This document shows positions 3,566 to 44,701 of a DNA stretch of 64,000 bases, piece after piece. The position numbers and the translations under genes are program-made. Positions within the stretch are counted from its first letter, which is position 1; the number at the start of each line of letters is the position of its first letter. This DNA comes from Eutreptiella sp. 'Long Island Sound 2002' (Eukaryota > Protista > Euglenida), in the NCBI GenBank assembly GCA_964036045.1, contig OZ038378.1, forward strand, positions 150,846,001 to 150,910,000. The letters run 5' to 3'. The notes under the pieces are model-generated. The model had not been told where the DNA came from. It saw only the letters and a list, made by a program, of their open reading frames with translations, and did no database searches.

Positions 3566-4291
3566 GACGCTCGGTTTTTGCTGCTTTGGCGGCTAGCGGA
3601 TACACTCTCCTTGAGATTCTTTGGTTAAGTACTGTTCTTTCTCCATCCAACATGCTACCTGTCCCCTCCTTGGTGCCGCTGCCACCCAGTGTGCGTGCAT
3701 GCACGGTCGCTGTCGACCATCTGCCGCTTGTAAATCACTTTATGCTCCGCTACTGGCCACTGCATGCTCCAAACTGAAGAAATTAGGACCGGGTTTTTGG
3801 GCACGGGACCTTGCTACTGCACCCCACCTGCATGACTTGCTCTCCCCCTCTGTCCTTGTGCGACGTGTGCGGAGCACCCTCCGGTCTTGTCCTGATTCTT
3901 TTCAGCCTATGGATGGGCCAAGTGTTTCCACGCCGCCCGCTGATGGCCCTGCCAGTTCTGTGGACTTCCCAAAGGCGCCGGCGAATGCACTCCCTGAGTT
4001 TTTTTTGGGAGTCCTGCCTCGCGTGTGCCACGCCGCAAGGTTAGGCGTGTAGCATGTGGGCGGGCTCAGCGCTGTCGACCACCGCGCGCGGGTGAACGCG
4101 TGTCCACCTCTGTGGCGGGTGCCCACCAATGCCTGACTAGGCACGGCCCAGCTTGCCAGGCTGGGTCAGAATGCCCCCCTAGTTCCTCGGTGCGAGTGGG
4201 ATGCGCTGTTCTAGGGCGTGGTGCGGAACCCCCCCAATTTTGGGGGTTGTTAATATGGTTGGAACCCGGACTTTCACATGTTACATGAGTG

Positions 4292-4294
<3 letters not shown>

Positions 4295-4335
<41 letters not shown>
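4295..4335. repeat. (TA)n microsatellite in the TxA left end
   Basis: About 20 TA units; absent at the equivalent position in the other left ends (~11200, ~26040). Confidence 0.95.
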
Positions 4336-4342
<7 letters not shown>

Positions 4343-4444
4343 CATAGTGCACATTGGTGCACTATGATGCAACAATGTGCCTTGCATGTCTCGTTTGCTC
4401 GATATTGCCCATTTTGCACTTTTTTGCGATTTGGTCTTTTTGTG

Positions 4445-4592
4445 CTCTAACTAGTTAGAACGGGGTTACAGCACTAGTTATCACGTGGGTTATCGCGCTA
4501 GTTATCACGCGATATCTAGTTATCGCGCGAGTTATCGCGCAGGTTATTGCGCCTCATTTTCTCTTGTTCCATGTTTCCCCTCTTCGCTTTAG
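4445..4592 (+). promoter_or_regulatory. GTTATCGCG / CTCTAACTAG motif array ending in a polypyrimidine tract and AG (putative trans-splice acceptor of cargo gene 1)
   Basis: Multiple GTTATC(A/G)CG copies, then TTTTCTCTTGTTCCATGTTTCCCCTCTTCGCTTTAG (AG 4591-4592), then ATG at 4610. Same layout at ~26105-26235 and ~11030-11115 (-). Confidence 0.65.
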
Positions 4593-5899
4593 CTCTCAAA
4601 TAATCTACAATGGCCCTTGCTGTAAGGGGAAGGGGAAGTCGGATGGTTGGTTCCCCCAACCCCTCACCCACAACACCCGCCGGGTCTGCAGTGACGACCC
4701 CGAAACCAAGCTCCCCATGCACTCACTTTGCCCCAAAAGGGAGGGGGAGCGTGAGTGGTATGGGATCACCACTCCCAACATTATTTCGGGGCAGGGGGTG
4801 ATCCTTTTTCCTTTTGGGGCAACACCCCCCCTTATTGGGGAGGCGGAGGAAGTGGTTGCGGCAGAGCCCGTGGGCCTTTAATAGGGATCCAAATGATCTT
4901 GTGGTCACCACCGGGGAAAGGTTGGTGGTGAACCACTTGATCGAGCACGAGTTTTTGAGTGTTGTGCAGCTGGACAGTCTTTTGGAAGATCTTGATAGGG
5001 TGCCTGTCTCAGAGAAGGCACCCATTTTCAATGAGAACCCCCCCATTGTGGGCAGGCCCCAAGATTCAGGGACCCGTCGCACAGTGTATGGCAACTATGG
5101 GGGCCCCAACCACCACAAGCACAACCCCCACCAGCTCCATAATCTGCCGGTCCTCAAAAGTCTAAGGGTCGCAAATCATGTGCTTGAGACTGCGAAGAAG
5201 AGTGTGGTGGGGGGGGTTGGGTGGAGCTGCACCATATTCTTGACATGGCCGAAATTTTGAGCTATGACCACACCCCGCAGCACCTCCATCGCGATCCCCC
5301 CCCCTACATTGTGCCTGAAGGCACATTGATTGTCAATTGCCTCATTATGCTTACGCATAATCATGAGGCCGAGGATGGGTCGCATTTTCTTTTTGTGCCC
5401 TCTAGTAGTTCGGGGTTCCTTGACCCTCGGGTGGAGAGGGTTGAGCCATTCAAGAGGGGCACTGCCTTTTTTTTCAATGCACTTGATGTTCACCGGGGTC
5501 GGGAACTCCAAAGGCCTCGCCCACTGGTGTGACCCATCCGCGGCTCATGGCATTCTTTGTAATTGAGCTAATAGGATGCAGCGTTCTAGGGCGTTTAAAT
5601 TGTGCAGAACCCCTAGTTAGAGCACAATTTCCAGAACACCCACCTAGCCTCAATTTTGGGGCAAACCACCTAGAAAAACGGATTCGGCACCCTGAAAAAA
5701 CCCCCCATCCTCTTTCTTTCCCCACACAACCCGCATCGTAGGGGTGGTTTTGGGGGGGGGGGTCAAAGAGTTAGAGCAGAGTTAGAACAGAGTTAGAACA
5801 CAGTTGGAGCACCTTGCTCTAACTGGTTAGAGCACTGGTTATCGCGCGATAACTAAGTTGTCGCGCAGTTATCGCGGGTATTTATCGTGCACCCCTCCT

Positions 5900-7210
5900 G
5901 ATGACCTGCTGGGATTTCTGTTTCCCAGATTGAATTCCCGTTTGTTGTGTCGTGTATATGTAAGAAGAGTGCAAGTGTTAGGATGAGACAAGAGAAACCG
6001 ACCCCTGAATGAAGGTAAGACCGTAGGCAAAATCATAAACTCATGGCATATGGGGACACGAAATTGCTCGCTTACAGTCACAGGTTATATGGCCGTCTTT
6101 TGAGAACATTGCTCGTCTTGTGCTCTCGTCAGTAGTAGTACTGCAGCTTCTACGTAGCCGCTCGTTTCCCGCGGCCTTCAACCTAGAAGTTTAATCCGAC
6201 ACGTCAGCACCAAAGGCTCACCACAGGAAGCGCAAACGTACACAGGACCCCCCCCCCCCTGCAACGAAAAAGCGCCGCACCAACCCCCACCCGCCCACAC
6301 AGCACCTACGGCGCCCCAGGTCAGCGTCCCAGTCCACAGAGAAACGGAAGCGTACCAAGCCCCAGTCCCCCCGACCCCCCACGCCTGAACCCCCCTCCCC
6401 CCCCCCCACCAGCACCCCCGGAGTCCCTGCAGCGCCCACCGAAGAAGCGCCTTGTCGAGCGCGCGTGCCGAGAATACCAACTGCCCCCCCCTCCAGAATC
6501 CCCGAGGTCGCCGATGTGCTCGGACTCCTCCATCTCCCCGCCCCCATCGCCACAGCGCACCCACAGCCCTGAGGTACCAACTGTGCTGGCCCCTCTGGGG
6601 CCACATGCAGACAGCCACCACAGGTCCATAGTTCAGGAATGGTGGCGACAAGAGATCGCACCGTGGAAGGCGCTCATCCTTGGACGCCAATACGCCGCAC
6701 AATATGATCAAATGTCCACAGAAAACAGGTGGTTGTACGAGAAATACAGGTATGATGTACATTTCCATTAGGGTACAGACACTGCCCCCCCACCCAGGAG
6801 ATGTGGGCAGACGGCATTCTGCACTTGGGCACCGCAGCAGCCCAGCACTGGTTCTTCCAGCAGGAAATGAAGGAGTTCTGTGATGCCTCCAGCAGCGATG
6901 ATCTGTGATTAGCCATCTCCCATGTCTCACCGTGAGATAAATCCTGACCCACCACAGGTGGGTCATTGACATGACGTGCTGGGATTTCTGTTTCCCAGAT
7001 TGATTTCCCGTTTGTTGTGTCGTGTATATGTAAGAAGAGTGCAAGTGTTAGGACGGGACAAGAGAAACCAACCCCTGAATGAAGGTAAGACCGTAGGCAA
7101 AATCATGAACTATGGCATATGGGGACACGAAATTGCTCGCTTACACTCACAGGTTATACGGCCGTCTTTTGAGAACATTGCTCGTCTTGTGCTCTCGTCA
7201 GTAGTAGTAG
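5900..7210 (+). mobile_element. Retroelement-like insert bounded by ~240-bp direct repeats (5901-6140, 6971-7210) ending in (GTA)n; probable TSD TCCT
   Basis: Near-identical direct repeats; TCCT on both sides; removal restores the TxA right-end sequence (cf. 15900-15930). No recognisable domain inside. Confidence 0.6.
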
Positions 7211-7274
7211 TCCTCCATCCCTCACTAGGACAAACAACACAAAACACTTGGCACAAAGCATTTGTGGTCTTTCT

Positions 7275-9687
7275 TCATACAAAGTCGTCAATGTCTGAGG
7301 CCTTGGCTGCCTCCAGTCCCAAATACCCTTGCTCCAGGGCGTTCATGGACATGCAATGGTGCATGTGGCGGAGGGACATACTTGGCCTCACCAAGGACGA
7401 ACCCTTGAAACAATTTTTGAGCCTTCTTTTGTAAGGCCCATGCCTATACTCCGTTGGGATGGAGGAAAACTGAAAAATGTTCCTCCATTTCTCAAAGTGG
7501 AATGTGCCAAGCACCAATGCATGGATCCACCTGGTGGGAGACCAACCTGAGTCTCTCCAAGCTTTTGAAAATTTTGTGGTCAACACACGGTGGCGTTCCA
7601 CTTGGGTTAGAGTGTACATCTCCCTCACCCTCCAAAGCTCATACAAACCCTCAATGCATTATACCATGACATGCACAACAACCCATAACGGAGATCCACC
7701 AGGGCTCCTCACTGTGGGGACATGATCTTTGGGACAATCCAAAAATTGCCTTTGGTACGGGGGGGGTTTAGGAAAACTTTGGTGCTTGTAAGATCAAAAT
7801 CTTTTTCCTTGGCCCTTGGGGCCGAGGGGAGACGTTCCCTGAGAGGGATGCCTGAGGTCTGATCCTTCAGGGTTTGTTTGAAGGCCTGCAAAGGTGCAAG
7901 AGCTTGGGCCTTACCAAGGGTACCAGGGGGGAGGGCCTGAACGGTGATCTCCGTCCCCTTTGCAATGCCATTTAGAATGCGGCATGCTTCATGCTGGTAG
8001 TCCCCCGGCCGTCTATCAGGGGACACACATCTCAAAAATGCCCCCCATCTTGAGGTGGACGCCACCCCCATTTGCTCAACAATACCATTGGGGTCTTTGC
8101 ACAACCAGCACTTAGACCCAGCCCCCCCATTGCTTGCATCCCCTTCCCATCCCCCGTCAAAATAACAATGCAAGTCAAAAATTGGTTTTGAAAGAGGACA
8201 ATGTCCTCCTCCACATCCCTCACCTCTTGGTTGAGGTTGGCGGAGATGTCCAGGCTTCTCAAAAAAGCCTGTTCATCCCCGCCATCCACGCAAAACCATG
8301 AGGCCCATAGCTTCACCTTCGAAGCATAGGAGCTGCACCAGGTAGGGGGGGGGGAGGGGGGGGGGAGGGGGGGGGTTTTCGGCTGGCCGCCCAGCCCGCA
8401 CCAGCCAGCCACGTAGCTAGCCACCTAGCCAACCACCATTGCTTTGTACATGCATGTCCGCCTCACCACCCTTGCTCTCAAGATCTCAAGATGATGTCAC
8501 CGATCCATGGAGTGTGTGGTAAAATTGTGTGGTAAAACAAAACATGGTGCATGATGGTGCATGATGACATGCCTGTTTCCCATGACAAGGATCAAGCTCA
8601 CGATGTTCCGACCCAAAAGCTGTATGACTTTGTGTTGGGTTACATGTCGCGGAATCAAGAGTTGGAGACGTAACTGTTTTTTGGAAAGGTGCCTTGGGAT
8701 ATGTATTGCAATATGGATGGTATATATTTCAGATTGAGGACAATTGTGTACTCTGAGGTTTACATCAGCAACAACAACATTTGCAGTTGAGCATACGTCT
8801 AATGCGGTGATTCTATGTGGTCTTTATGGGAGGTTCCGAAGGCAAGGCAACTTGGAGTATGAGGTAAGGGTTTTCTTGAAAGGTGGCCGACCCCCCCACC
8901 CTTGCAAACCCATCCCCATACCCATACCATGCATGAGAAGAGGCGGTACAATGGTGCACTACGTATTTTCGCTGTTTTCCGGGGGCACGCCAGCCAGCCA
9001 GCCAGCCAGCCGGGGGGGGGGGGGTTTCCAAAGCCTCCCAGCCACCCAGCCGCGGCTAGGCGCAGCTCCATACTTTGCCCCCCCCCCCCCCATACACTGA
9101 CCCATACATCCGCACGGGTTGAGGATGCCTTCCACAAGGAAGTCGCATCAACTGAAATGACAACAATGGCAACGCCACTATGGGGTGATAGGGGGGGGTT
9201 TCCCAATAACTCGGGCCATAGATATTGCATTATGCACAATTGACTGCTAAGGCACATGGGCAGCTACCCTACTGCGGCCTGTGGTAGACTTTACAATGGT
9301 TGCTTGGGGAAAGTAGGGCATGACCCGTTGCCGAACGGTCCTTAGGTCCCATTGGGTACAACGGCGGGGCATTCGCAAAAGGGCCCGCTGGTAAAGATGC
9401 ATGCTGCATGCCATGCGTAGCATGCTCAGGGCGTCATGCTCCTGAGCTGTGAATGCAAGATGGCCACCAAGTGGGGCAGACAGGGCAATGCACGACCCAC
9501 CACTTAAACAAACTTCTCCTTTGGTGTTGGTGCCACACACAATGTTGGGATCCCCCAATAGAACTCGCATCAGCCGCTGAACACCTTTCAACCGCCGCCG
9601 CTGGGCCTTGGGGCGTTGCAAATCGGTGCACCGCCGCGGGTTAGCTGAATTCAGAGCTCTTAGGGCCTCATTGACAGCATTATCCAT
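7275..9687 (-). pseudogene. TxA DDE transposase, RAG1/Transib-like (copy 2; split by MITE 8329-9069; frameshifted)
   Basis: IVVISVDATSLW (D1); ILTGDGKGMQAMGG-AGSKCWLC (D2 at 8149-8151, CxxC); GDYQHEACR; TRWIH...SSIPTEYRH (E at 7449-7451). Confidence 0.8.
8329..9069. mobile_element. 741-bp MITE, TIR GGAGCTGC(A/G)CC, 3-bp TSD ATA, (GCCA)n subterminal repeats
   Basis: ATA at 8326-8328 and 9070-9072. The empty site (GCAAAATATGCTTCG) is at ~41889-41903. Confidence 0.88.
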
Positions 9688-9706
9688 GAAGAATAAGGGC
9701 CTTGGG

Positions 9707-11005
9707 TTAGCTCAATTGCAAGAATGCCATGAGGCGAGGATGGGTCACACCAGTGGGCAAGGCCTTTGGAATGCCCAACTCCCGGTGAACATCAAGGGCT
9801 TTAAAAAAAAAGGCAGTGCCCCTCTTGAATGGCACAGCCCTCTCCACCCAAGGGTCAGAGAAACCCCGAACTACTAGAGGGCACAAAAGGAAAATGCGAC
9901 CTATCCTCGGCCTCATGATTATGGTTGAGCATAATGAGGCAATCAATGTGCCTTCAGGAATGGTGTAGGGGGGGTATCGTGATGGAGGTGCTGCGGGGTG
10001 TGGTCATAGCTCGAAATTTCGGCCATGTCCAGGACGGTGCATCTCCACCCAACCCCACCCCACCACACTCTTCTTCGCAGTCTCAAGCATACGATCTGCG
10101 TCCCTTTTGAGGACTGGCAGATTATGGAGCTTGCGGGGGTTGTGCTTGTGGTGGTTGGCACCCCCATAGTTGCCATACACTGTGCGGCGGGTCCTTGAAT
10201 CTTGGGGCCTGCCCACAATGGGGGGGTTCTCATTGAAAATGGGTGCCTTCTCTGGGAGAGGCACCCTATCCAGATCTTCCAAAAGACTGTCCAGTTGCAC
10301 AGGACTCAAACACTCGTGCTCGATCAGGTGGTTCACCACGAGCCTTTCCCTGGTGGTGACCACAAGATCATTGGGGTCCCTGTTAAATGCCCCCAAGGGC
10401 TGGGCGGCAACCACCTCCTCCGCCTCCCCAATAAGGGGGGCTGTTGCCCCAAAAGGAAAAAGGATCACCCCCTGCCCCGAAATAATGTTGGGAGTGGTCA
10501 CCCCGTACCACTCACGCTCCCACTCCCTTGTGGGGCAAAGGGAGTGCATGGGGAGCTTGGTTTCGGGGTCGTCAGTGCAGACCCGGCGGGTGTTGTGGGT
10601 GAGGGGTTGGGGGAACCAACCATCCGACTTCCCCTTCCCCTTAACAGATCGGATCCTTACCTTCTGGACACTAATTATGAAGGGGTTGTGCGGCTTGTCC
10701 TTCCCCGTCCCAGACCCCACCTCCACCACCTCCTCCACTTCCTCCTCCATTTCCTCCTCCACTTCCTCCTCTTCCTTTTGACCCACATAGAGGGTCGTCT
10801 TCGTCCCCGCACGCTTCTCGGCATGGGTGGTGACGGACTCCACCACCGCGTCCACATCCTCCGGATGAAGCTGGATCAAAAATCCAGCAACCCCTGGATT
10901 TACCTCTAGCAACTCGAAGATGTAGTTGCTGATAACCAGGGGGCGACGGACCCCAAGGAGCTTTTGATGGTGCTCGCACCAAGCGTGGGTAGCAGCAAGG
11001 GCCAT
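9707..11005 (-). pseudogene. TxA cargo gene 1, copy 2 (best-preserved N-terminus + PhyH-like 2OG-Fe(II) domain)
   Basis: ORF 10004-11044, likely start MALAATH at 11005 after a polypyrimidine-AG; acidic tract. Frameshifted continuation contains QHLHHD and KRGTAFFFKALDVHR..HPRLMAF. Confidence 0.75.
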
Positions 11006-11993
11006 TGTAGAGTATTTGAGAGCTAAAGCGAAGAGGGGAAACATGGAACAAGAGAAAATGAAGCGCGATAACCCACGCGATAACTAGTGGTGTAACCCCG
11101 TTCTAACTAGTTAGAGCACAAAAAGACCAAATCGCAAAAAGTGCAAAACGGGCAATATCGAGCAAACGAAACATGCAAGGCACATTGTTGCATCATAGTG
11201 CACCCATGTAACATGTGAAATTCCGGGTTCCAACCATATTAACAACACCCAAAATTGTGGGGGTTCCGCACCACGCCCTAGAACAACGCATCCCAAACCC
11301 CAGGTCCTAATCTTCGATCCCCTAACCTTCATGTCACCCGGTCCATCAAGCGGCCCCAGCTGGGGGCACCTGGGGGCCGGGTGGCCAAGACCGTCCCTTG
11401 TGAGGGGGCGGTTAGGTTTAGAGGGAAGGTTGTAGCCAAGTGCTACGGCTGCGACCGGGCGGCTTTGTGCGCCGCCCACAAAGATGGTCTTTGTGTGCCA
11501 TGCCAGGAGGGGGAGGAGCTAGAGGCGGGGGAGGAGGAGGAGGTGGTGGAGGACCCCAATGGGGTCGGCATTGAACAATGTGCTCAATGCTTGCTCCCGG
11601 TGGGAACAACCACCGAGAATTTTTTGTTGTCGGGGTGGGTGGGAGGTGGTTGCCCCCCTCACCACTGAGGAGATGGGGGGGGTCGCAGGCCACCCCGATC
11701 AGTGCCCCTTGGCCAAGGTGTGCCATGGGGAGGCACTGCCGTGGCCCACCTTGCAAGGGCATGTTGGGATTAAGGTGCCCCGGGGCACCATTTTGGTGGT
11801 GAGGAAGGGAATGCATGGAGGAGTGGTAAGGGTCGCCCTTGAGCTCGAGGGGGTGGCCCAGGTGGTGGAGTGGAGGCAAGTGGGGAAGTATGCAGCCGTC
11901 ACGGATTTCGTCTTGCTGCGGAGGATAAACTTGGTGCTGGACGACCCAAGAAGGAGGCGGGCAAAGGCATGTGCCCATGTCACTAGGTGTGAA

Positions 11994-12214
11994 TAGTGCC
12001 CACTACACCCTGCTCTAACCCTTGCTCTAACTCGTTATCGCGACAGTTATCGCGCTCTACCTACGTGCTGTAACTAGTTATCGCGCTAGGTTATCGCGTT
12101 CTAACTAGTTATCGCGGGGGTTATCGCGGGGGTTATCGCGTTCTAAACAGGTTATGGCACGAGTTATCGCGGTAGTTATCGCGTGTTTTTTTTTGTTTCT
12201 TTTGTTCTTCCCAG
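11994..12214 (+). promoter_or_regulatory. Internal motif array (TAGTG-CC-CACTA, then GTTATCGCG repeats, polypyrimidine-AG) upstream of cargo gene 2
   Basis: Paralog at 35497-35705 has the perfect palindrome TAGTGCGCACTA. AG at 12213-12214 is followed directly by a reading frame conserved between copies. Confidence 0.65.
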
Positions 12215-13971
12215 GCCACAATCCTGCAGCTGCGTCTCTTCGTCAAGGAGGCAGCCGAGGCAGCAGCAGCAGCAGCAGGAGGAGCAGCAGAAGCAGCAGG
12301 GGCACGGGCCGCCAAGCCGGTGGCTGCCCGTGTGGAGCTGGAGGGGGGGGCTGCCGGAGGGGGCCGCCTGGCGATGGGGGGAACCGGCGGACGAGGCTTG
12401 CCGGATGGGGGGGACCGGATGGTACCGGCAGGTCACCATCACGGAGAAGGAGGGGGGGGTGGAGAGGAAGACCAACCTCACCCTCCCCGGCTATGTGTGG
12501 GTTGGGGGGGGGAAACGGCCAAATGGCCGAATGCCGCTAAGGGGGAAACGGTTGGAGTGTTTTTGTGTTTGTTTGGGATGAGTGAGCCCCCCCAAAGGAA
12601 AAACATTTTTTTTGAGGGTGTGCTTCATTGATGAATCATCGGGGGAGTACAGTGGGAGGGAAGTGTGGTAGAAGCTGCACAGGGGGGGGGGGGGGCATCC
12701 ACCAGGTTAGGGGGTACAAGGCCCCCCAATTTGTGTGTCTGCCTCATGGGTCCAGGCGTATGCGCCCAAGGGGGGAAGGCCCACCAAGCATGCGAAGCGG
12801 GGGGCTGAGGTGGTGGTCGTTGAGCCGGATGCCCCCCCCACCCCGATGATAGGGCATCCACCCCCTCCCCCAAGTCGTCGAAGGTAGCCAAGGTGGCGGC
12901 CCAACCCCCCCCCCCCACAAGGCCCTTGATGTGGAGGCCTTGGGGGCCGGTGTGGCCACCCACGTGACGGACGCTTGCCAAACTTTGGTCGTGCAAACGG
13001 CCGCCACGGGGGTCGAGGCCGCACTGGCCAAGGGTCGGGCGGCCGACCACAAGTCGGCCTTGGCGAAGGCCGAAAACGTCCAGGGCAACATTCAGCGTGC
13101 CCTAGACCAGGCCCTCAACTTGGCCACCAATAGGGGGGAGCAGCTGGTGACGGTGAGGGGGGCCCGGAAGACGGCCGAGGAGGGGAGGCAGAAGGCTGAG
13201 GTGGAGGGGGCTCAGCTGAGGGTGGAGGTGGAGGCGCTGCGGAGGAGGGGGGATGACCCCCAGCACCGCCTGGGGGTGGCTGAGGCGCAGGTTTGCAGCC
13301 TCACCTCCACCCTCAGCGCCACCTACTCCGCCCACCAGGGGATGTGTCCACCACGGGTGCAGACTCAGGGTAGCGGGAGGAGGAGTGGGAGTCCACGACT
13401 AGTCGGTTTGCCCAAGGGGTTGCCTAAGGGCATTTTTCGCTGGGAGGAGCGATATGGGGCCCAAGTGGACATGTGCCACTTCGGCTTTTTGGGGAGCGCA
13501 AACCCCAACCCCTCTACTGCTACCCTGAGGCCTCCCCTCACCCCCTTGGTTGTGAGTTTGAATGAGTATTGCACTTGGAATGCTCCACCGTGGTTCACAT
13601 GGTGTAGCATCCAAGTTGTTCGCCCGCACGGGACGGACAGCATGGGCCCTCACGCCCATTTGCGTGATGGGGCGCCCATGGCGCTGATTGTGTGTGTGGG
13701 GTCTTTGACGGGGGGAGATTTCTGGGTGGAGGGTGGTGGCCTGCTGCATCCCTCCATGAGGGACAAAAAGCGGCACACCCGTGTGTGCAAGGGTAGGGCG
13801 GTGGAGGGTTGGGCATGCAAGGCCACACCCCAAGCCCCGGTATTGTTCAACACCCGGGCACTACACGCTCCATTGCCATGGGAGGGCGAGCGATGGAGCG
13901 TGATTTTTTCCAGGGGGGTTGCTGCACTCCACGCCTACGTGGCGGCAGCAGCTTGTCTACCTGGGTTTTAG
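12215..13971 (+). CDS. TxA cargo gene 2, copy 1: Ala-rich/coiled-coil N-terminal part + TET/JBP-like 2OG-Fe(II) dioxygenase (open 12931-13971; upstream part frameshifted in G/C runs)
   Basis: MGPHAHLRDGAPMALIVCVGSLTGGDFWVE...PVLFNTRALHAPLPWEGERWSVIF: H 13651, H 13657, distal H 13864, RxS 13891. Confidence 0.75.
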
Positions 13972-14000
13972 GGTGCCCAATGCTTGCTCTAACCCCTCTA

Positions 14001-14190
14001 GTTAGTGCGCACTAACCTCTGCTCGAACTAGTTATCGCGGTAGTTATCGCGCTCTAACTGGGTGCTCTAACTAGTTATCCTGCTCGGTTATCGGGCTCTA
14101 ACAGAGTTATCGCGTGGGTTATCGTGTGGGTTATCCCGCGATAACCTAGTTATCGCGGGGGTTATCGCGTAGGTTATCGCGCATGTTTTT
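14001..14190 (+). promoter_or_regulatory. 16-bp palindrome GTTAGTGCGCACTAAC + GTTATCGCG array upstream of the transposase position
   Basis: Palindrome at 14001-14016; identical one at 41106-41121 precedes the transposase in copy 3. Confidence 0.7.
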
Positions 14191-14214
14191 TGAGGCCCCT
14201 GCGCCGAAACCGCA

Positions 14215-15797: not shown

Positions 15798-15905
15798 GCA
15801 AGCGCTTTTTGGACTGGAGGCAGCCAAGGCCTCAAACCTTGAGGAGTTGGTGTGGAGAAAGACTAGAAACGCTTTGTGCCAAGTGTTTTGCCGTGTTTGT
15901 CCTAG
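15798..15905 (+). pseudogene. C-terminal remnant of the TxA transposase
   Basis: LFGLEAAKASNLEELVWRKTRNALCQVF matches the 3' ends at ~42900-43000 and ~7240-7330 (-). Confidence 0.8.
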
Positions 15906-16015
15906 TGAGGGATGGCGGAGGGGTGCGCGATAACTACCCGCGATAACCGCACGATAACTCAGTTATCGCGCGATAACTAGTGCTCTAGCTAGTTAGAGCA
16001 AGGTGCTCTAACCGT

Positions 16016-34278: not shown

Positions 34279-34293
34279 TTTGGAAGATCTTGA
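32727..34293 (+). pseudogene. Penelope-type RT of PLE-2 with a long B-to-C spacer
   Basis: EQDIEEIYWGVPK (A), QGTTGIPIEGFLSA (B, ~33372), SRFRDN (C, ~33922); stops and frameshifts. Confidence 0.75.
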
Positions 34294-35499: not shown

Positions 35500-36438
35500 T
35501 GCGCACTACACCCTGCTCCAGCCTGTGCTCTAACTAGTTATAGCGGCACTTTTCGGGCTCTAACGGGGTGCTTTAAGTAGTTATCGCGCTAGGTTATCGC
35601 CTTCTAACTAGTTATGGCGGGGTTATCGCTAGAGGTCCTCGCCGTCTAGCTAAGTTATCGCGGTAGTTATCTCTTGTTCTTTTTTATTTCTTTGCTCCTT
35701 CCCAGTCAACAATCCAACAGGTGCCGCGTCTGTTCACCAAGGAGGTGGCCGAGGCAACCACAGCAGGAGCAGCAGAAGTAGCAGTGTACCCTTCGTGAAC
35801 GGGGGTTAACTGGTCGATTGAATGAAGCGTGAATTTCATGTGAGTTTGACTTATGTTTCGTGTTTTTTTCTTCTGAGGAAACACTACATTTTGGCTTCAA
35901 TATGACGTATTAGATGGGACAAGGCTCAAGCCCCATTTCCCCTCCCCGTGATTAAGTGAAAGTCCCACCCCAGACGGACCCATGAGGCCCAAACGGCGCC
36001 CAAAAAATAATCCCGGCAACATGTTACGGTACCGTTGGGCCCGAATTTGCGAAATTCTTACGAATTTCGTCCAAATTTCCACGTAATTTGTACGAAATTT
36101 GTGGGAATCCGGCAGATCCGTACGGAATTTGTGCGAATGTCGCACCCACTGCCTTTCACCAAAATCTCTAGATTCGTACAAAATACGTGCGAACTTCGTA
36201 CGAAATTCGTTAGAATTTCGTATCACTTTCCCAAAAAAATCCAAATTGCAGCAAAAACTCACCCGAAATCACTCGAAATTCACGGATGCGTGAATTCGGT
36301 AAACTCGTGTTACGCTCGACGTGATTCAGCCGAACATTTGCAAGCTACCAACAAGATCAAATTTCAAGACATTTCTAGCGACAATGTTTTGGCGAAGATG
36401 ACACAAGAAACGCAAATGATGGCACCAAGGTATCTCTC

Positions 36439-36464
36439 ACTTTCTGAGTGTCAATTTTTTTTGG
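36439..36464 (+). ncRNA. Genomic copy of the euglenid spliced-leader exon (retro-inserted)
   Basis: ACTTTCTGAGTGTCAATTTTTTTTGG vs Euglena gracilis SL ACTTTCTGAGTGTCTATTTTTTTTCG as I recall it: 24/26. Followed by a 16-nt UTR and ATG, not by an SL-RNA intron. Confidence 0.88.
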
Positions 36465-36480
36465 TGCTATTTCTTCGTCC

Positions 36481-37515
36481 ATGGAAGACCCCAAAGTGGG
36501 GCAGAATGCAATGCCGCACTTCCCGGAAGTGACAGAGAGTTACCCGATCGTCCCGGCCTGCACACCTGCCGCTGTGGGATCGGATGGAGGCACCTCGGTC
36601 GAAGGAGTTGCCGGTACGCCCCCCACTCAATTTCTGACTATTTTGACTCCAACGAGAGCAGCAGCTGTCGCCATGGACACCGCAGGCAATTCCGTCAGAC
36701 CCGTCATGGCCGCCACCTCAGGTGACTACGGTTGGGACACCGATGGTGTGAGTGCTGTCATTTTCAACCCTCCTGATCTTTCTGACGATCCCGAGGCCGT
36801 CGCTCGGCCGAAGGGGAATGAGATCAAGAACGCCCGCTTGGCTATGATCCCCATGCTGCACTACTACGTGCAGGCCTTGGTCACCAGTGAGGGTTCCAGC
36901 GCTGCCTATGGCCGCGTGGCTGACAAGTTGGCTGACTGTTTCAACCCCTCGGGTCTCTCTGACGATCCCGAGACCGTCACTGTGCTAAAGGGGAACGAGA
37001 TCAAGCACACCCGCTTTGGCCAAGCGACGGACAAGTTAATCGACAAGTCCGGTGTCCCGAGGACAGAGATTGACAATGCCGAAAAAGGACAGGCAATTGT
37101 GCAGACGGCCACCAGCCAGGATATCAAGTATGCCTTCTGTACTTCTGCCCTGCTCAACGCTGGGAACGCCGGCGAGGTGATGGACATAACTGAGACCACG
37201 GATGAAAATGAGAATGCACGTGAAGAGTATCCCGGGGACTACGGGACTATGGAGAATTATTATGACCCGGAACACCACGACATATGGGGGGACAGTGAGG
37301 ATGGTCAACGGTACCAAAAGGCCCCAAGGGCTTCTGTCAACGCTGACTCCATGAACCCCAAGCAGGCCGCTCAGTTGCTGATGTACAACACTGTCCCGAC
37401 CAATTTTGAGGGTGCTCCACCGGTCATTGAATCCAACTACTCCGACCCACTAATCAAGGACACCTGTGGAAGTGCTTCTTATCATGTTGCAGACGCTCGC
37501 CGTTCGGATGGCTGA
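36481..37515 (+). CDS. Processed retrocopy of a trans-spliced mRNA encoding a rearranged light-harvesting-complex (LHC)-derived protein; 3' end fused to a LINE
   Basis: Open frame from the first ATG after the SL. GDYGWDT (36721), FNPPDLSDDPE..EIKNARLAM..YYVQALVT.EG (36820), a second FNPSGLSDDPE..EIKHTR, and EEYPGDYG match Lhcb/Lhcbm signatures. Confidence 0.75.
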   Translation: MEDPKVGQNAMPHFPEVTESYPIVPACTPAAVGSDGGTSVEGVAGTPPTQFLTILTPTRAAAVAMDTAGNSVRPVMAATSGDYGWDTDGVSAVIFNPPDLSDDPEAVARPKGNEIKNARLAMIPMLHYYVQALVTSEGSSAAYGRVADKLADCFNPSGLSDDPETVTVLKGNEIKHTRFGQATDKLIDKSGVPRTEIDNAEKGQAIVQTATSQDIKYAFCTSALLNAGNAGEVMDITETTDENENAREEYPGDYGTMENYYDPEHHDIWGDSEDGQRYQKAPRASVNADSMNPKQAAQLLMYNTVPTNFEGAPPVIESNYSDPLIKDTCGSASYHVADARRSDG

Positions 37516-39860
37516 GACCAGAGCGTGGCTGGATGCCGGAAGACGCACCGCCCCGAGCCAGATTTGTCCCCCGCCCAAACACGCCCCAAACGGCGGTGGG
37601 TCAGCGAATATCCCAACCCAGGCAACATCGACCCCCGTCGGCGGGACTATACGACTCGGAGAGCTCGGAGGAGGGTCAAGAGACACACACAGGGAAGACA
37701 CGGCCGGCGACCAACCGTCTGGACTACGGCTGGATGAACCCGCCAGACGAACGAACCCCTCAAGAAAACCCACGAGGTTTGTCAGGCGCTACCCCACGAG
37801 CGGAAGATCCACGGGATCACCGTACACTACACGGGAGAACCCACCACCACACGGTGGTATACAGACGGGTCGAAACGACACGGACGAACGGGAGGGGGTA
37901 TTTACAACGGGACCTACCACGCGGCTTTCCGGGTGCACGGGCCTCAGCAAGTGTATCGGGCCGAGACAATCGCTTGCGCTCTGGCCTCTGAACCGGCCAG
38001 ACCAGGGGACGACATCATACTTGACAACCAGAGTGTGGTGAAAGCCACACCTATAAAACGCAAAGGAGTGGTCAAGGACCAGGACTACCGCGACATAGGT
38101 TATCTCAACATCTCCTCGAAACGACTGGCGATACGATGGACACCGGGACATTGTACCCTGGAACAAGCCGCCACGTATAAAGACTCCCAAGACATACAGG
38201 GGAACAACCACTCCGATGTCCTTGCCAATATGAGCGACAACCTGTTCCTGGACTCCCAACAACCATAACCCCATGATATTGTCATCACCGGACAAATCAT
38301 GCCCAGGCCTGCCAAGGCATAGATTATGCAAGTGCGTAGACAAAAAAAAACAACAGAGGTACACTGAGTGAGCTGGCTCCCCATGAAACACTACAGACGA
38401 AACACGGGGACACCATGGCTGTGGGGGCAGGTAAGGTGGTGGGGAGTAGGTGCCCCTTGGGGCCGAACACCCAGCCTCTGCTCCCAGTGTGGCCAACAAC
38501 ACGGAGCATCAGTGCAGTCGAGAATGGCTTACTGTCCCGCCTGGGGCGATTTCTGGGACCTTTGGCGCAGGAGCTGGACTGATTGGGCCCAACACACATA
38601 CCAATGGCAGCAAACGGCCAACAGCCAAGAACTCTGGCTCCGTGCCAGGCTGCTCGTACCACTGTCTCTCATCGCCGCCATACCCACCACAGAACGGCAT
38701 AACCTTCGGACGGAGGTGGGCCTTTTTCAGTTTCACATGATTTAGTCTGTCCAAACGCTAAGACTGAAATACGCAGACCCTACACCTCACCAGCCGCCGT
38801 CACCCCTATGGCTGACCAAGTACGTCGCTCAGGCACTCCCACCACGAGAAACGCCGCAAAACCTACGGAACCACGTCGGGGCGCCCATGCGGAGCGGCAC
38901 GAAACGCAAACGTAGGACCGAGGTCGCGACGGCGGAAACGATCGACCCCGACCAATGGATACGTGATGCGCGCGGCGCAAACGACGATGAGGCAGTGGCA
39001 TGGTTCGCAAGAATACGAGCAACTAACACAGCACAAGACGAACCCACCCAGAAGCGTCACCGTCTCAGCGTTGACGCACAACGATAGGAACAGTACCGAA
39101 ACACAGCAGGCAGGTTGGCACAAGAACACGCACAGCAAACACACGACATATACCACAGGGCACACGCCGCTGCGCTGGCACGGCAACACCTACGCAGCCT
39201 GCACACGCACTACACCAACACACTAACGGCCAAAACGGACTATCACATGCTCGTCACAAAACTAATCCAAGACCAGATGACAGCACAACGACTGCAAGAC
39301 ACACACGCACACCTGTGCCAAATAGGCAGGCAATGGTATGAACAAGCAAAGTACGACACAGGGACGTGGTATGCAGATGCAAAAATGCTGCTGCTGATCT
39401 GCGGACGATACCGGAGGCTGTGCGCTGGCACCGAGAAGCCGCTGGACCTTCATCTACGACAGGCACTCTATATGTGGTGCCAGCAGAAATACTTGGCAAC
39501 ATGACACAGTGCTACCATGACGCCTGCAAACAGAAGACGACACAATACTGGCAAACAATTCGACCAGCACGACAGACGATATACCTCATACAGAAACGGC
39601 CAAACGAACCTTGAGACCCCACCTTGTGGGAAGTCCGGATGCAGCCACTACCAAAACGCCACAAAACGCACTAGGGTCCAAACGAGTGAAAAATACCAAT
39701 GACATGACCACAACCACCCCAACGGGAAACCATGGGGGCGCAGTCACGAGCTGCAGCCCGTATGCACACCCCGGCTTTGCGGAAATCTGTACTCTGCATC
39801 GAACCTGGCCCACAGTGGCCCTTGGCACATTATGAACTGGCCCATTTGATAAAAAAAAAA
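37505..39860 (+). mobile_element. 5'-truncated LINE: RNase H, C-terminal Zn motif, further 3' ORF remnants, poly(A)
   Basis: WYTDGS..VYRAETIA..ILDNQSVV..RWTPGH..GNNHSDVLA; CSQCGQQH..YCPAW; A10 at 39851-39860 followed by GGTATC. Confidence 0.85.
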
Positions 39861-39941
39861 GGTATCAGCGAAACAAAGCAAAATTTCGTCGAATTCACGC
39901 TACCGTGAATGTCCCAGTCAAAGCTTCAAGAAGGGTATAAG

Positions 39942-41090
39942 GAGCACGGGCCGCCAAGCCAGCGGCGGCCCGTGCGGAGCGGGAGGGGGAGGGGATCAAG
40001 AGGTTGCCGGAGGGGGCAGCCTCGGGGTGGGGGGGCCAGCAGACGAGGCCTGCCGTCAGGGGGGGACCGGATGGTACTGGCAGGTAACCATCACGGAAAA
40101 GCAGGGGGGGGGGTCGATAGGAAGACCAACCTCACCCTCGCCTCCAATGTGTGCTTTGGGGGGCAAACGGCGAAATGGCCAAATGTGCCTGAGGGGCAAA
40201 CAGTTGGAGCGTTTTTGTTGTTGTTCGGGATGAGCGACCCCCCCCCCCCAACGCAAAAACCGTTTTTTGCTGAGGCTGCGCTTCGTTGATGAAGCAACGG
40301 GGGAGTACAGTAGGCGGGAGGTGCTTCAGCTGGGCACGGGGAGGGGGGATGACCTCAAGCAGCGCCTGGGCGTGGCTGAGGCCCAAGTGCGCAGCCTCAC
40401 CTCCACCCTCAGTGCCACCTACACCGCCTGGCAGGCAGGGGTGCAGTGTCAAGGTACCGGCAAGAGTGGGAGTCAATGACTCGTGGGTTTGCTCAAGGTG
40501 TTGCCTAAGGGCATTTTTCGTTGGGAGGAACGAGATGGAGCGCAACGGGACATGTGTCACTTGGGCCTCGTGGGAAGCGGAAACCCCAACCCCTCTAATT
40601 TTAGGTCGACCAGGATGGCTACTGCTACCTTGAGGGCTGCCCTCCCCCCGTTGGTTGCGGGGCTCAATGAGTATTGCAGTCGCAATGCACCACGATCGTT
40701 CACATGGTGGAGCATCCAAATTGTTCGCCCCCAAAGGACTGACACCATGGGCCATCACGCCCATTTGCGTGATGGGGTGCCCATGGCGCTGATTGTGTGT
40801 GTGGGGTCTTTCAAGGGAGGAGATTTGTGGGTGGAGAGTGGTGGCTTGAAATATCCCTCTAAGGGACAAAAAGCGGCACACCCGTGTGTGCAGGGGTAGT
40901 GAGGTTGGGGGTTGGGCATGCAAGGCGACGCCAGAAGCCCCGGTGCTGTTCAACACCCGGGCACTACACGCTCCATTGCCATGGGAGCTTGAGCGATGGA
41001 GCGCGATTTTTTATAGGGCAGGGGGGTTGTTGCATTGCACGCCTACGTGGCGGCATCAGCTTGTGGACCTTGGTTTTAGGCTGCCCAAAG
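39942..41090 (+). pseudogene. TxA cargo gene 2, copy 3 (TET/JBP-like; 5' part at 35706-35784)
   Basis: MGHHAHLRDGVPMALIVCVGSFKGGDLWVE..PVLFNTRALHAPLPWELERWSAIFY; coiled-coil segment deleted; frameshifted. Confidence 0.8.
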
Positions 41091-41306
41091 TGCACTAACC
41101 CTCCAGTTAGTGCGCACTAACCTTTGCTCTAACTAGTTATCGCGGTAGTTATCCCGTGTAACTGGGTGCTCTACCTGGTTATTGCGCTAGGGTATCGCGC
41201 TCTAACTGAGTTATCACGCGGGTTATCGCGGGGGTTATCGCGCGTGTTTTTTGGGCCCTTGTGTCAAAACCAGCCCTCATTCCCCACCCATGACCTCTTG
41301 TTGTTC

Positions 41307-42956
41307 ATGGATGCTGTTGTTAATGAGGCCTCGAGGGCTCTGAATTCAGCTAACTGGCGGCGGTTCACCGAGTTGCAATGTTCTAAAGCCGGGCGGCGGC
41401 GGTTGAATGCTGTTTCGCCGCTGGTTCGAGTTCTCTTTGGGGATTTCAACATCGTAACACCAAGGGAGAAGTTTATTTAATTGGTGGGTCTTGCACAGCC
41501 CTCTCTGCCCCACTTGGTGGCCATCTTGCATTCACAGCTCAGGAGCATGAGGCCCTGAGCATGCGACGCATGGCATGCGGAACCTTTCCAGCAACCCCTT
41601 TTGCGAATGCCCCGCCGTTGTACCCAACGGGACCTAAGGACCGTTCGGCAACAGATCATGCCCTACTTTCCCCAAGCAACTATTATAAGGTCCACCACAG
41701 GCCGCGATAGGGTAGCTGCCCATGTGCCTTTGCGGTCAATTGTGCATAATGCAATATCTATGGCCCTGGTTATTCGGAAACGCCCCCTAGCGGCGCCGCC
41801 ATTGTCGTCATTACAATGGATGCGACTTCCTTGTGGAAGGCATCCTCTACCTGTGCCGATGTATGAGTCAATATATGGGGGGGGGGGGGCAAAATATGCT
41901 TCGAAGGTGAAACTATGGGCCTCATGGTTTTGCATGGATAGAGGGGATGAACATCGTTTTTTGAGAAGCCTGCATGTCTCCGCCAACCTCAATCAAGAGG
42001 TGAAGGAGGTGGAGGAGGACATTGTCCTATTTCAAACCGAATTTCTGACTTGCATTGTTATTTTCCCGGGGGACCGGAAAGGGATGCAAGCAATGGGTGG
42101 GGCTGGCTCGAAGTCTTGGTTGTACAAAGACCCCAATGGTATTGTTGAGCAATTGGGGGTGGAGTCCACCTCAAGATGGGGGGGCATTTTTGAGATGTGT
42201 GATCCCTGACAGACGACCTGGAGACTACCAACATGCAGCATGCCGCATTCCAAATGGCATTGCAAAGCGCACTGAGACCACCTTGTAGGCCCTCCCCCTT
42301 GCTACCCCTGGTAAAGCCCAAGCTCTTGCAGCTTTGCATTTCTTCAAACAAGCCCTCAAGGAATGAGACCTTAGGCACTCCTCTGAGGGAACGTCTCCCC
42401 TCGGTCTCAAGGGCCAAGGGAAAAGATTTTGATCTCACGAGCACAAAGGTGTTCCTCATCCCCCCCCACCTTCCAAAGGCAATTTGTGGATTGCGTCAAA
42501 GAGCATGTCCCTTTCGAGATGTCCCCTGGTGGACCTCCATTTTGGGTTGTTGTGCATGTCATTGTGAAATGCATTGAGGGTTTGTATGAGCTTTGGAGGA
42601 TGAGGAAGATGTACGCTCTAACCCAAGTGGAACGCCACCGTGTGTTCACCACAAAATTTTCGAAAGCCTGGGGAGACTCAGGTTGGTTCCCCACCAGGTG
42701 GATCCATTGGTGGTTGGCACATTCCACTTTTGTTGCTCAGAAGTGGAGGAATATTTATCATTTTCCCTCCATCCCCACCAAGTATAGGCATGGGCCTTAC
42801 AAGAGGAGGCCCCAAAATTGTTTTAAGGGTTGGTCGTTGGTGAGGCCAAGTATTTCCCTCCGCAACATGCACCATTGGATGTCCATGAACGCCCCGGAGC
42901 AAGGGCTTTTCGGACTGGAGGAAGGCAAGGCCTCAGACTTTGAGCAGTTTGTGTGA
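41307..42956 (+). pseudogene. TxA DDE transposase, RAG1/Transib-like (copy 3, full length ~550 codons, several frameshifts)
   Basis: MDAVVNEA start; ITMDATSLW (D 41819); GDRKGMQAMGG (D 42072); GDYQHAACR; WIHWWLAH (H 42705, 42720); catalytic E position is AAG (42780) here but GAG in copy 2. Confidence 0.8.
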
Positions 42957-44701
42957 AGAAAGACCAAAAATGCTTTGTGCCAAGTGTTTTGCCTTGTTTG
43001 TCCTGGTGTGGGATGCAGCAGGGGTGCCCGATAACTACCCGCGATAACTGCGCGATAACTGAGTTATCGCGCGATAACTAGTGCTCTAACTAGTTAGAGC
43101 AAGCCACCTCTGCTCCAACTCTGCTCTAACTCCAAAGATCACTTTGCCCCCCCCCCCCCCCTAGAAACCACCCCTACGATCAGGGTTGCATCGGGAAAGA
43201 AGTGGGATGGGAGGTTTTTGAGGGTGCCGAATCCATTTTTTTAGGTGGGTTGCCCCAAGTTTGAGGCTAGGTGGGTGTTCTAGAAATTGTGCTCTAACTA
43301 GGGGTTCCGCACCACGCCCTAGAACGCCACATCCCAACAGGTCCATTTTTTGTCATGGACATGCCGGCACCACCTTGTCCGGTCGACTATCAGCTGGCAA
43401 GCGCCGAGATGATGACCTGCAACTTTTCCGACCTGGAATATGGGAGCTCCGTGGTGCTGCAGGTAATCCTTCCTTGCCTAATGGGCGTTGCAATCTGATA
43501 ATGCACCGGGGTTATGGACACCAGTCTGCGGCTACGGGTAAGGTTACGGTTCGGCACGTCCGGGGATACGCAACGCTGTCTGCGGCTACGGGAGGTTTTA
43601 CGTGTCTTGGCTCTTTGTTTGCACACCAAAGACCCTCGCAACATCTTCGTCGCGAGTTGGATCAAGTTGCTCGGCAAGACGGTCCGACATTTGGAGTCGT
43701 CCTGCTCATAACTACAACGCCGTGGGCGTGCATGGGGGACTGGACCTGAATGTTACCGACGTCACCAACGTATAGGCCCTTAAGGGATTTGTGGACGCCC
43801 AGGGTAACCACGGCGCCGTGGGCGTGTATGGGGGGCTCAACCTGAATGGTACCGACCTTATCAACGTGCAGACGCTGAGGGGACGCGTGGACGCCGGCAC
43901 GTGGACGTTGTGTCTTGAACCTCTTCGTTGAGGGTCTGTTGGTCACCGTCTGTGTCCAACAACGGCCAACCAAACCACACCTCAACACCCTAACCATTTT
44001 CAGCAAGCCATATACTGGCATTTTCTAGGACGCGCGGTACATCCCTGAAGACGTGTGAAAGGTTGTGGTGCTGTCTAGAGTCTTGTTGCTGTCTAAAGTC
44101 TTGTTGCAAGTCTTCTAGTTGCTCTGCTAGGCTACGTTGTTCTCTCTGCAAGCCTTGTAAGCCGGCATATATGCGGCATATGAGGATGGCATTACAGGAG
44201 TGGCAACATTGCCGTTGCAGTCGGTGGATGTGCTTTTCCGATGTCCGGTGTTTGGTCTGCAGTGCGTTGATCATCGATGTGATGTTCGTGTTGCCTTTTT
44301 TTTCTACTTGCCGAATCGGTATCATCACGGTATATCGACGTCATCGTCCGGGGGGGGGGGGGTGTATACATGTACAGAGGAGCATGGTTTGGTACGATAT
44401 AGGCTTCTCAGCAAGTCGACAACATCACACCGGATCCTAAATAGAAACGGATGCACAACCGGGAACACTGCCCAGTGATAGACCGAGCGATGCCATTTGG
44501 TGAACTTTATCAAACGACTATAAAGGGTTATGGGTATGAGGGGGTTGTAGAAGCAACTAGCAGTATCCCTCCAAGGAACACAACAAAACAGTCTATCAAA
44601 GACACAACTACACTTAAGCTCACCGGCGCCAAAGAGATGGACGTCCCCACATTGGAGGAGTTGGGGGACCGCAAGTTCATGAACTCCCAGGTCCTCAACA
44701 T

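Follow-up and report, generated by a model that had tools for sequence, protein, structure and literature searches.

Results

Three Copies of the TxA Transposon in the Window

We analyzed a stretch of 64,000 nucleotides from the genome of the euglenid Eutreptiella sp. 'Long Island Sound 2002' (contig OZ038378.1, positions 150,846,001 to 150,910,000), referred to below as the window. Its GC content is about 55%, and its open reading frames (ORFs) are fragmented and eukaryote-like. The window carries copies of a DNA transposon, TxA, which is bounded by terminal inverted repeats (TIRs) and contains three genes: ORF1, ORF2 and a transposase gene. Using the 36-nt TIR pattern TGGGATGCGCTGTTCTAGGGCGTGGTGCGGAACCCC with up to three mismatches, we found four sites in the window (4197+, 11295−, 25944+ and 43336−) and none in shuffled sequences. 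A relaxed pattern search found one further TIR at 16484−. By itself, the heptamer TGGGATG shows no enrichment in the window (15 found and 15 expected). Thus, the signal lies only in the long TIR. BLAST of the window against itself separated three decayed, nested copies, A, B and C (Table 1); the initial annotation had likewise described three diverged copies. The window copies are not intact (0 of 3 complete; copy A is without a transposase gene), and all three are dead. Copy B holds extra DNA at about 5900–7211 and 8329–9069. Copy C is interrupted by large insertions at 26281–34278 and about 35785–39939.

Copy A is flanked by AG on both sides, and a single AG is found at an empty paralogous site. 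The host segments 2843–4196 and 16485–18091 match 21877–24380 at 91–97%, i.e., about 2.5–3 kb are duplicated, and one of the two segments carries copy A. Long ORFs of this duplicated segment (16596–17768, 20762–22273 and 22948–24057) have no Pfam match, and the segment may be another repeat family. Copy B is flanked by AA on both sides, and its uninterrupted counterpart in copy C is GAGCTAACCCAAGG at about 34797–34808. The 2-bp target site duplications (TSDs) and restorable empty sites claimed earlier for copies A and B were thus found in place. The flanks of copy C, AT and AC, form an imperfect duplication. Copies at related loci have the TSDs CA (L005), TT (L003), GC (L004) and TT (L010). 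In total, a perfect 2-bp TSD borders six of the seven copies counted as complete in the window and at related loci, with a chance expectation of 1/16 for each. The duplications of these seven copies show no sequence preference.

Searches of Pfam and of PDB sequences with ten ORF pieces from the window returned nothing. Because the window copies are too decayed, we used intact relatives, which were reached through protein homology and the contigs that encode the proteins. The close relatives, including L005, all come from one ENA assembly, ERZ25074135, which has Mb-scale contigs. The intact copy, L005 5410–12040, is 6,631 bp long and has two identical TIRs. Its genes follow in the order ORF1, ORF2, transposase, so that the gene order and the size of 6–7 kb reconstructed earlier hold for an intact element. 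They encode an ORF1 protein of about 607–680 aa, an ORF2 consisting of an N part, a TGA and a C part (ORF2N and ORF2C), and a transposase of 552 aa (P0121). Clusters at 90% identity contain 275, 174 and 137 members for pieces of the transposase, 491 and 220 for ORF1, 219 for ORF2N and 235 for ORF2C. As many as 18 contigs carry identical TxA proteins. These cluster sizes and identical copies show that TxA is abundant, present in hundreds of copies, some of them identical, and point to recent activity; in abundance, the companion genes match the transposase. In four gene calls (P0143, P0218, P0235 and P0144), ORF1 is fused either with the transposase or with ORF2C, and from their sequences they appear to represent TxA elements with internal deletions. 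Two of the four are broken within or beside the two oxygenase-like cores. Genes for a piggyBac-type DDE_Tnp_1_7 protein and for reverse transcriptase/integrase lie near TxA copies (L005 12640–13962; L002 369–3266; L003 1–4982), and the genome is repeat-dense.

The Transposase Has a Predicted RAG1 Fold

A Pfam scan of P0121 at E-values up to 10 matched no family, and the Pfam models of the CACTA, Plavaka and RAG1 transposases gave no match to the TxA transposase. In a search of 1.84 billion representatives we obtained 538 transposase homologues, among them full-length proteins of 29–38% identity on short metagenome contigs. Scanning 59 homologues against Pfam at E-values up to 0.1 revealed no common family and only stray chance matches of single members. 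PDB searches with P0121 as a single sequence and with the 59-sequence profile gave no match, RAG1 and Transib included. A metagenome profile scan with an eight-member transposase alignment returned two short contigs without context. Since the sequence and profile searches were empty, the fold could be assigned only by structure comparison. The AlphaFold model of P0121, built from the 59-sequence alignment, has a predicted local distance difference test score (pLDDT) of 90.5 and a predicted template modeling score of 0.84. When compared with the PDB by Foldseek, the model gave 49 matches with E-values from 7.5e-11 to 1e-5, all of them RAG1, BbRAG1L of amphioxus or HzTransib. The template modeling (TM) scores are 0.4–0.58 over about 580 aligned columns, nearly the whole chain. 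The next match after this group, Hermes, has an E-value of 4.6e-3 and a TM score of 0.24. According to the model, the whole-chain fold of the transposase is that of RAG1 and Transib.

Seven residues are invariant in eight diverged transposases (29–37% identity): D177, D260, C274, C277, H470, H475 and E495. The motifs follow in the order D, D, CxxC (C274/C277), Hx4H (H470/H475) and E, so that the Cys and His pairs lie between D260 and E495. E495 lies 20 residues past the second His, which we take to be the spacing between H942 and E962 in RAG1. The transposase had been annotated as RAG1/Transib-type. The fold bears this out, and the word 'Transib' proved too narrow, given the 2-bp TSD, the TG..CA termini and the occurrence of the motifs throughout a wider clade, CMCT. 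The TSD, the termini and the lack of profile similarity speak against Transib proper; we class the transposase as a RAG1-fold protein that fits the CMCT clade.

ORF1 Encodes a Putative PhyH-like Oxygenase

The intact 679-aa ORF1 (L001 223–2259) matches nearly the full PhyH model of Pfam at E-values of 0.008–0.02, and ORF1 matches 2OG-FeII_Oxy_3 at E-values down to 3.9e-4; both matches are sub-threshold. A profile of ORF1 from three lineages matched the PDB entry 4nao_A ('putative oxygenase') with an E-value of 0.027, and in the alignment the HRD motifs of the two coincide, as do the distal HRG motifs. The W-H-R-D and distal H-R-G motifs, which form an H-x-D ... H iron triad, are kept in the ORF1 of TxA, of the paralogous family TxB described below and of a metagenome relative, L006. 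The L006 contig encodes a transposase with 36% identity to P0121 and, after it, a 529-aa homologue of ORF1 (E-value 3.5e-23), which reaches 27.9 bits with Pfam PhyH and so lies above the threshold. Downstream of the ORF1 core there is a conserved cluster of eight Cys/His ligands and then a further conserved domain. The zf-B_box model did not match the C-terminal region of ORF1, and the Cys/His region gave weak matches to IBR (E-value 0.1), zf-C2HC5 (0.04) and the RING of RBX1 (1.5). The weak matches, together with the above-threshold relative, support ORF1 as a putative PhyH-like Fe(II)/2-oxoglutarate (2OG) oxygenase with a Cys/His zinc finger. Of the PhyH-like/B-box gene proposed by the initial annotation, the oxygenase and the Cys/His cluster are kept and the B-box is dropped, as the region is only weakly IBR-, C2HC5- or RING-like.

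ORF2 Is Divided by a Conserved TGA

The N part of ORF2 gave coiled-coil type matches only. ORF2C (P0178) is 210 aa long and has a conserved H-x-H-x-R-D motif, a distal His and, nine residues later, R-x-S/A. Pfam scans at an E-value of 10 with 13 TxA members and TxB found no Tet_JBP and no 2OG family. PDB searches with single ORF2C sequences and with two profiles gave no match, and a metagenome scan for ORF2C relatives found none. The hhalign probability for ORF2C against the ORF1 oxygenase is 0.1, so the two have no detectable paralogy. AlphaFold modeled ORF2C from a shallow alignment of 13 near-identical sequences with a pLDDT of 34, and its Foldseek matches are noise. Together with the form of the H-x-H-x-R-D motif, these results do not uphold the earlier description of ORF2 as a TET/JBP gene.

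The stop codon of ORF2 is TGA in six of eight TxA copies (L005, L010, L001, both copies of L002 and copy C of the window); the position is TAA in L004 and CGA in copy A. In-frame TGAs were located at 8892–8894 in L005 and at about 13405–13407 and 20439–20441 in L010. The context in TxA is CAA TGA CTA G. The same CAA TGA CTA is found at the same boundary in TxB, and a fragment of a third ORF2 lineage has TGA CTC. This fragment (L010 20142–20900) is 28% identical to ORF2C and lies just upstream of a TxA copy that starts at 20917. Past the TGA, the frame is open for about 210 codons, with a ratio of nonsynonymous to synonymous substitution rates (dN/dS, omega) of 0.40, when compared with about 1 in the other frames. 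UGA CUAG is a recognized leaky readthrough context (bioRxiv 10.1101/2021.04.18.440353). A conserved TGA whose context is leaky and which is followed by an open frame under selection points to programmed stop-codon readthrough as the most economical reading, and we regard ORF2 as a candidate for it. A nonsense mutation of a young subfamily was also considered; we rejected it, as TGA is also present among old copies and in two lineages besides TxA.

ORF1 and ORF2 Appear to Be Old Core Genes

TxB is a family paralogous to TxA, and a piece of it interrupts a TxA copy in L010. Its gene order is that of TxA: an ORF1-like gene (27% identity), a coiled-coil ORF2N-like part, an ORF2C-like part (32%, E-value 8e-28) and a transposase-like gene (30%, E-value 1e-65). 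The right terminus of TxB is also CATCCCA, and 107 members make up its transposase cluster. In L010, the TxB piece (10497–16597) lies inside the transposase gene of the TxA copy, is truncated at the 5' end and is accompanied by foreign flanking sequence of about 80 bp. Its junctions are unlike those of normal transposition; because of the truncation and the foreign flank, no target duplication can be read for TxB. The linkage of ORF1 with the transposase is found in L006 as well.

We computed dN/dS for pairs among seven TxA copies and summed omega for five of them against L005. In frame, omega is 0.35 for ORF1, 0.40 for ORF2C, 0.32 for the transposase and 0.71 for ORF2N; in the two shifted frames it is 0.9–1.4. 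The conservation of all three genes and of their order in a family of about 30% identity argues that ORF1 and ORF2 are old core genes, which their sequences indicate to be under purifying selection, and not casual cargo. The word 'cargo' used in the initial annotation therefore understates their part. Neutral evolution or rarity of these genes would have counted against the annotation; we found omega values of 0.35–0.40 and hundreds of members in the ORF1 and ORF2 clusters.

Repeat Arrays Precede the Genes

In TxA, arrays of about ten 12-bp units, based on the palindrome GTTATCGCGCGATAAC, lie upstream of all three genes, and a fourth array lies inverted near the right end (Table 1). The arrays are followed by a polypyrimidine tract and AG. 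Arrays of TxB, L006 and L007 are similarly placed and are built on palindromes of their own (GTATACGGCCGTATAC, TTACTGCGCAGTAA and GTAAGCGCCGCTTAC). The array motifs change with the proteins, which suggests that the arrays are putative protein-binding sites, like the subterminal repeats of CACTA elements. They may also serve gene expression.

Table 1. Features of the TxA copies in the window and repeat arrays of the intact copy L005 (L005 positions refer to that locus).
Feature	Position	Strand	Remarks
Copy A	4197-16484	+	4197-5571 plus 11296-16484; 6,564 bp without copy B; left end, ORF1 remnants, ORF2; TSD AG
Left TIR, copy A	4197-4232	+	0 mismatches to pattern
ORF1 part 1, copy A	4622-5569	+	Oxygenase core HLHRD ... 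ALDVHRG, open piece 5188-5529
ORF1 part 2, copy A	11309-11996	+	Past the copy B insertion; Cys/His zinc-finger region 11381-11668, C-terminal domain
ORF2 N-terminal coiled-coil part, copy A	12610-13395	+	Coiled-coil type matches only
ORF2 recoding position, copy A	13396-13398	+	CGA, then CTAG; TGA in nearly all other copies
ORF2 C-terminal domain, copy A	13399-13971	+	H-x-H-x-R-D ... H ... R-x-S motifs
Tandem repeats in place of transposase gene, copy A	14519-15800	.	Units of ~200 and 414 bp
12-bp GGGGTTATCGCG / GTTATCGCGCGATAAC repeats, copy A	12012-12190 (upstream of ORF2), 4454-4557, 13984-14189, 15920-16012 (inverted)	+	
Right TIR, copy A	16449-16484	-	Relaxed pattern search
Empty paralogous site for copy A	23014-23015	.	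Single AG
Copy B	5572-11295	-	5,724 bp, inside ORF1 of copy A; TSD AA; without ORF1 end and ORF2
Left TIR, copy B	11260-11295	-	1 mismatch to pattern
ORF1, copy B	9700-11005	-	Longest open piece 10004-11044; frameshift just before HRD motif
Transposase gene, copy B	7275-9687	-	Split into 9083-9687 and 7275-8328 by a 740-bp insertion; frameshifts
12-bp arrays, copy B	5770-5895		
Right TIR, copy B	5572-5615	+	Degenerate: TAGGATG..., small insertion
Copy C	25944-43336	+	All three gene regions (the only window copy with them), broken; flanks AT/AC
Left TIR, copy C	25944-25979	+	Pattern search
ORF1 remnant, copy C	34279-35105	+	Start at 26254-26280
ORF2 in-frame TGA, copy C	40477-40479	+	Then CTC
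ORF2 C-terminal domain, copy C	40480-41112	+	Frameshifted
Transposase gene, copy C	41307-42956	+	Frameshifts; CxxC mutated to SxxY; first-Asp region deleted
12-bp arrays, copy C	26121-26193, 35525-35671, 41091-41250, 43021-43131		
Right TIR, copy C	43301-43336	-	Pattern search
12-bp arrays, L005	5598-5740, 7534-7652, 9775-9942, 11730-11852		

Other Sequences in and around the Copies

Three ORFs of the 8-kb insertion in copy C (26281–34278) have no Pfam match. The sequence 25221–25646, just outside copy C, recurs at 49499–49918. A simple dispersed repeat of TACGAAATTCGT-like units, translated as FVRNSYEIRTKF, is found beside or inside TxA copies (window 36040–36230 and L001 4638–6300). Copy C also contains a retrocopy of the mRNA of a chlorophyll a/b-binding protein (LHC) at about 36439–39860, with an A-run end near 39850. 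It starts with a relic of a Euglena-type spliced leader, TTTCTGAGTGTCAATTTTTTTTGG (36441–36464; 0 expected by chance), which differs by two mismatches from what we take to be the Euglena leader sequence. The relic directly precedes an ORF (36448–37515) with a Chloroa_b-bind domain. The dinoflagellate spliced leader was searched for in the window and is absent. The leader relic marks the host as a euglenid, and a dinoflagellate host was discarded.

Discussion

Relation of TxA to Known Systems

The TxA transposase resembles HzTransib, BbRAG1L and RAG1 in its whole-chain fold, in the catalytic Asp-Asp-Glu (DDE) triad, in the CxxC after the second Asp and in the Hx4H located 20 residues before the Glu. 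TxA differs from Transib and RAG1 in having a TSD of 2 bp and not of 5 bp, TG..CA termini in place of the CACWRTG heptamer, a shorter transposase (552 aa) and no profile similarity. In contrast to RAG1 systems, it has no RAG2-like partner; oxygenase/zinc-finger and coiled-coil proteins stand in its place. EnSpm/CACTA, Mirage, Chapaev, Transib, Plavaka, ESTA, Lanisha and RAG1 all have the C(2)C and H(3–4)H motifs and constitute the CMCT clade (Kojima 2025, PMC12730594). TSDs in this clade are 2–5 bp long and the termini are 5'-CA..TG-3' in most lineages; PlavakaA has a 2-bp TSD and TGT..ACA termini (PMC12730594). TxA is similar to the clade in its C(2)C and H(4)H motifs, its 2-bp TSD, its several genes and its CACTA-like subterminal repeat arrays. 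Its TG..CA termini differ from the CA..TG of most lineages, and PlavakaA shows that CA..TG is not universal. TxA also differs in residing in a euglenid and not in a plant, animal or fungus, and in having arrays upstream of each internal gene as well. The similarity to EnSpm/CACTA is limited to the 12-bp subterminal arrays, since TxA has a 2-bp and not a 3-bp TSD, TGGGATG and not CACTA termini, and no Pfam match. As in En/Spm with its TnpD and TnpA, a transposase is combined with an accessory protein, and 12-bp motifs form direct and inverted arrays near the ends. The arrays of En/Spm bind TnpA. The accessory proteins of TxA are unrelated to TnpA and are encoded by separate genes, not by splice variants.

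TET/JBP genes are carried by fungal CMCT transposons (ESTA, EnSpm and Plavaka), and the ESTA transposase matches RAG1 by HHpred (PMC12730594). TxA resembles the fungal TET/JBP transposons (KDZ, Plavaka, ESTA, EnSpm and PHISTA) in that a DNA transposon travels with a gene of a 2OG-Fe(II)-type oxygenase. Such elements were reportedly treated by Iyer et al. in 2014. In contrast to them, the TxA oxygenase is PhyH-like, is fused to a zinc finger and has diverged together with the transposase across lineages, and TxA has a second gene that is a candidate for being read through a stop codon. We found no fungal element with the TxA gene set in the literature searched, nor any description of the TxA family, of a CACTA- or Transib-like element in Euglena or of a PhyH-type oxygenase in a transposon. 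The initial annotation knew of no element that pairs a RAG1/Transib-type transposase with two dioxygenase genes; this needs qualifying in that RAG1-like CMCT transposons with a TET/JBP gene are known from fungi. In E. gracilis, only Merlin elements have been reported (PMC8101967). The in-frame UGA-CUA(G) of TxA, with a selected frame behind it, resembles the UAG between retroviral gag and pol and the cellular genes with UGA-CUAG. We know of no programmed readthrough in an accessory gene of a DNA transposon or in euglenids.

Alternative Explanations

Taken together, the data make it probable that TxA is an autonomous cut-and-paste transposon of euglenids with a RAG1-fold transposase and two obligatory helper genes. 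Another explanation concerns the nature of ORF2C. It may be a very divergent TET/JBP dioxygenase which, together with ORF1, writes or erases base modifications on the element or its targets, such as oxidation of 5mC or thymine hydroxylation of the base J type. The ORF2C of TxA and TxB have in common H...D, a distal His and an R-x-S-(V/I)-(I/V)-F-Y tail, which presumably resembles the C-terminal strand of TET proteins. ORF2C is also under purifying selection, and for the TET/JBP proteins of fungal transposons, sequence methods can be blind (HHpred E-values of 1.4–19) when the structure is clear (PMC12730594). However, neither Pfam nor the PDB gave a match for ORF2C, hhalign did not relate it to the ORF1 oxygenase, its low-confidence model found only noise, and in H-x-H-x-R-D the His and Asp are two residues apart and not one. 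We consider a TET/JBP nature of ORF2C unlikely, though it has the most weight among the alternatives. The in-frame TGA of ORF2 might instead be an inactivating mutation or the true end of the gene, with the downstream domain never made. The sense codons CGA in copy A and TGG in P0175 fit such an ending. Each of them is one step from TGA and two steps from the other, however, and TGA is found in its CAA TGA CTA context in both old and young TxA copies and in two further lineages, with a selected frame of about 210 codons behind it. An unmade downstream domain is thus improbable.

The structure comparison raises the question of whether TxA belongs to the Transib superfamily proper, as direct kin of RAG1. 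RAG1, BbRAG1L and HzTransib are its best structural matches, and it has the C(2)C and H(4)H motifs with the Glu 20 residues past the second His. These motifs are, however, shared by all CMCT lineages, and PlavakaA, in the same clade, also combines a 2-bp TSD with TGT..ACA termini (PMC12730594). The TSD of TxA is not the 5-bp one of Transib, TGGGATG...CATCCCA stands against CACWRTG, and no Pfam RAG1 or PDB profile match to RAG1/Transib was obtained, even with the 59-sequence profile. Direct kinship with Transib therefore seems very improbable to us. Still less credit can be given to the possibility that ORF1 and ORF2 are genes captured from the host, carried as passengers without a role in the element. 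Deleted copies that lack ORF2 (copy B of the window and L003) do carry TSDs, which means that they were transposed, possibly with help in trans. However, the same three genes keep the same order in a family only 27–32% identical, a homologue of ORF1 adjoins the 36%-identical transposase of the metagenome contig, the omega values of 0.35–0.40 are on par with that of the transposase, and the copy numbers are similar to it. A passenger role is already largely refuted.

Proposed Mechanism

In the autonomous element with two helper genes that we favor, the transposase would bind the TIRs and probably also the lineage-specific palindromic 12-bp arrays. It would excise the element and reinsert it with a stagger of 2 nt. 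ORF1 is predicted to be an active PhyH-type Fe(II)/2-oxoglutarate hydroxylase fused to a zinc finger. Translation of ORF2 would yield a short coiled-coil protein and, when UGA is read through (CAA-UGA-CUA) in a programmed manner, a rarer long form with a C-terminal domain that looks like a metal site. Both proteins may be obligatory helpers, with chromatin or the transposition complex as their site of action. Their most likely role would be to hydroxylate a chromatin-bound substrate, either protein or nucleic acid, within the element or where it inserts. This hydroxylation may permit transposition or an escape from host silencing.

Several points weigh against this explanation. The activity of TxA is judged from the sequences of identical copies alone. 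With 15–17 bits (15.4–17), the PhyH match of the TxA ORF1 remains below the Pfam cut-off of 22. The His-Asp spacing of ORF2C is H-x-x-D in place of the H-x-D of 2OG oxygenases, and the in-frame TGA could reflect two separate products or another mechanism of recoding. D177, D260 and E495 were equated with D600, D708 and E962 of RAG1 by the spacing of motifs and not by a structural alignment. We know of no CACTA, Mirage or Chapaev transposase with a solved structure, so Foldseek is no guide to which CMCT branch is nearest. Finally, the dN/dS pairs are not independent, and their omega values mix the neutral decay that follows insertion with evolution of the active lineage.

A bolder version can be imagined. 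TxA may represent a deep, unnamed RAG1/CMCT branch in euglenids and their relatives, whose transposase is unable to act by itself and depends on two partners that evolve with it, a zinc-finger PhyH-type hydroxylase and a coiled-coil protein with a cryptic oxygenase as its readthrough extension. Together, the proteins would place chemical marks on the bases of DNA or on proteins of chromatin, at the palindromic arrays of their own element, and so control when it is excised or silenced. Thymine hydroxylation is one candidate for such a mark, as euglenids make base J. In this full form, we regard the idea as a long shot.

Significance

RAG1 builds the antibody genes of vertebrates, and its relatives are studied for the origin of V(D)J recombination. 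A transposase with this predicted fold in a euglenid widens the known range of the fold. The 2-bp TSD and the different ends make TxA a natural comparison for what determines target-site spacing. The UGA-CUA of ORF2 is a candidate for programmed readthrough both in a DNA transposon and in Euglena. Gene calls on the contigs of the source assembly present TxA as hundreds of separate short unnamed proteins; TxA, with its hundreds of copies, and TxB belong in the repeat libraries of euglenids. The partnership of oxygenase and transposase appears to be long-standing and not a recent capture. Thus, the role of transposon-borne 2OG oxygenases becomes testable outside fungi, in an organism with an unusual base chemistry.

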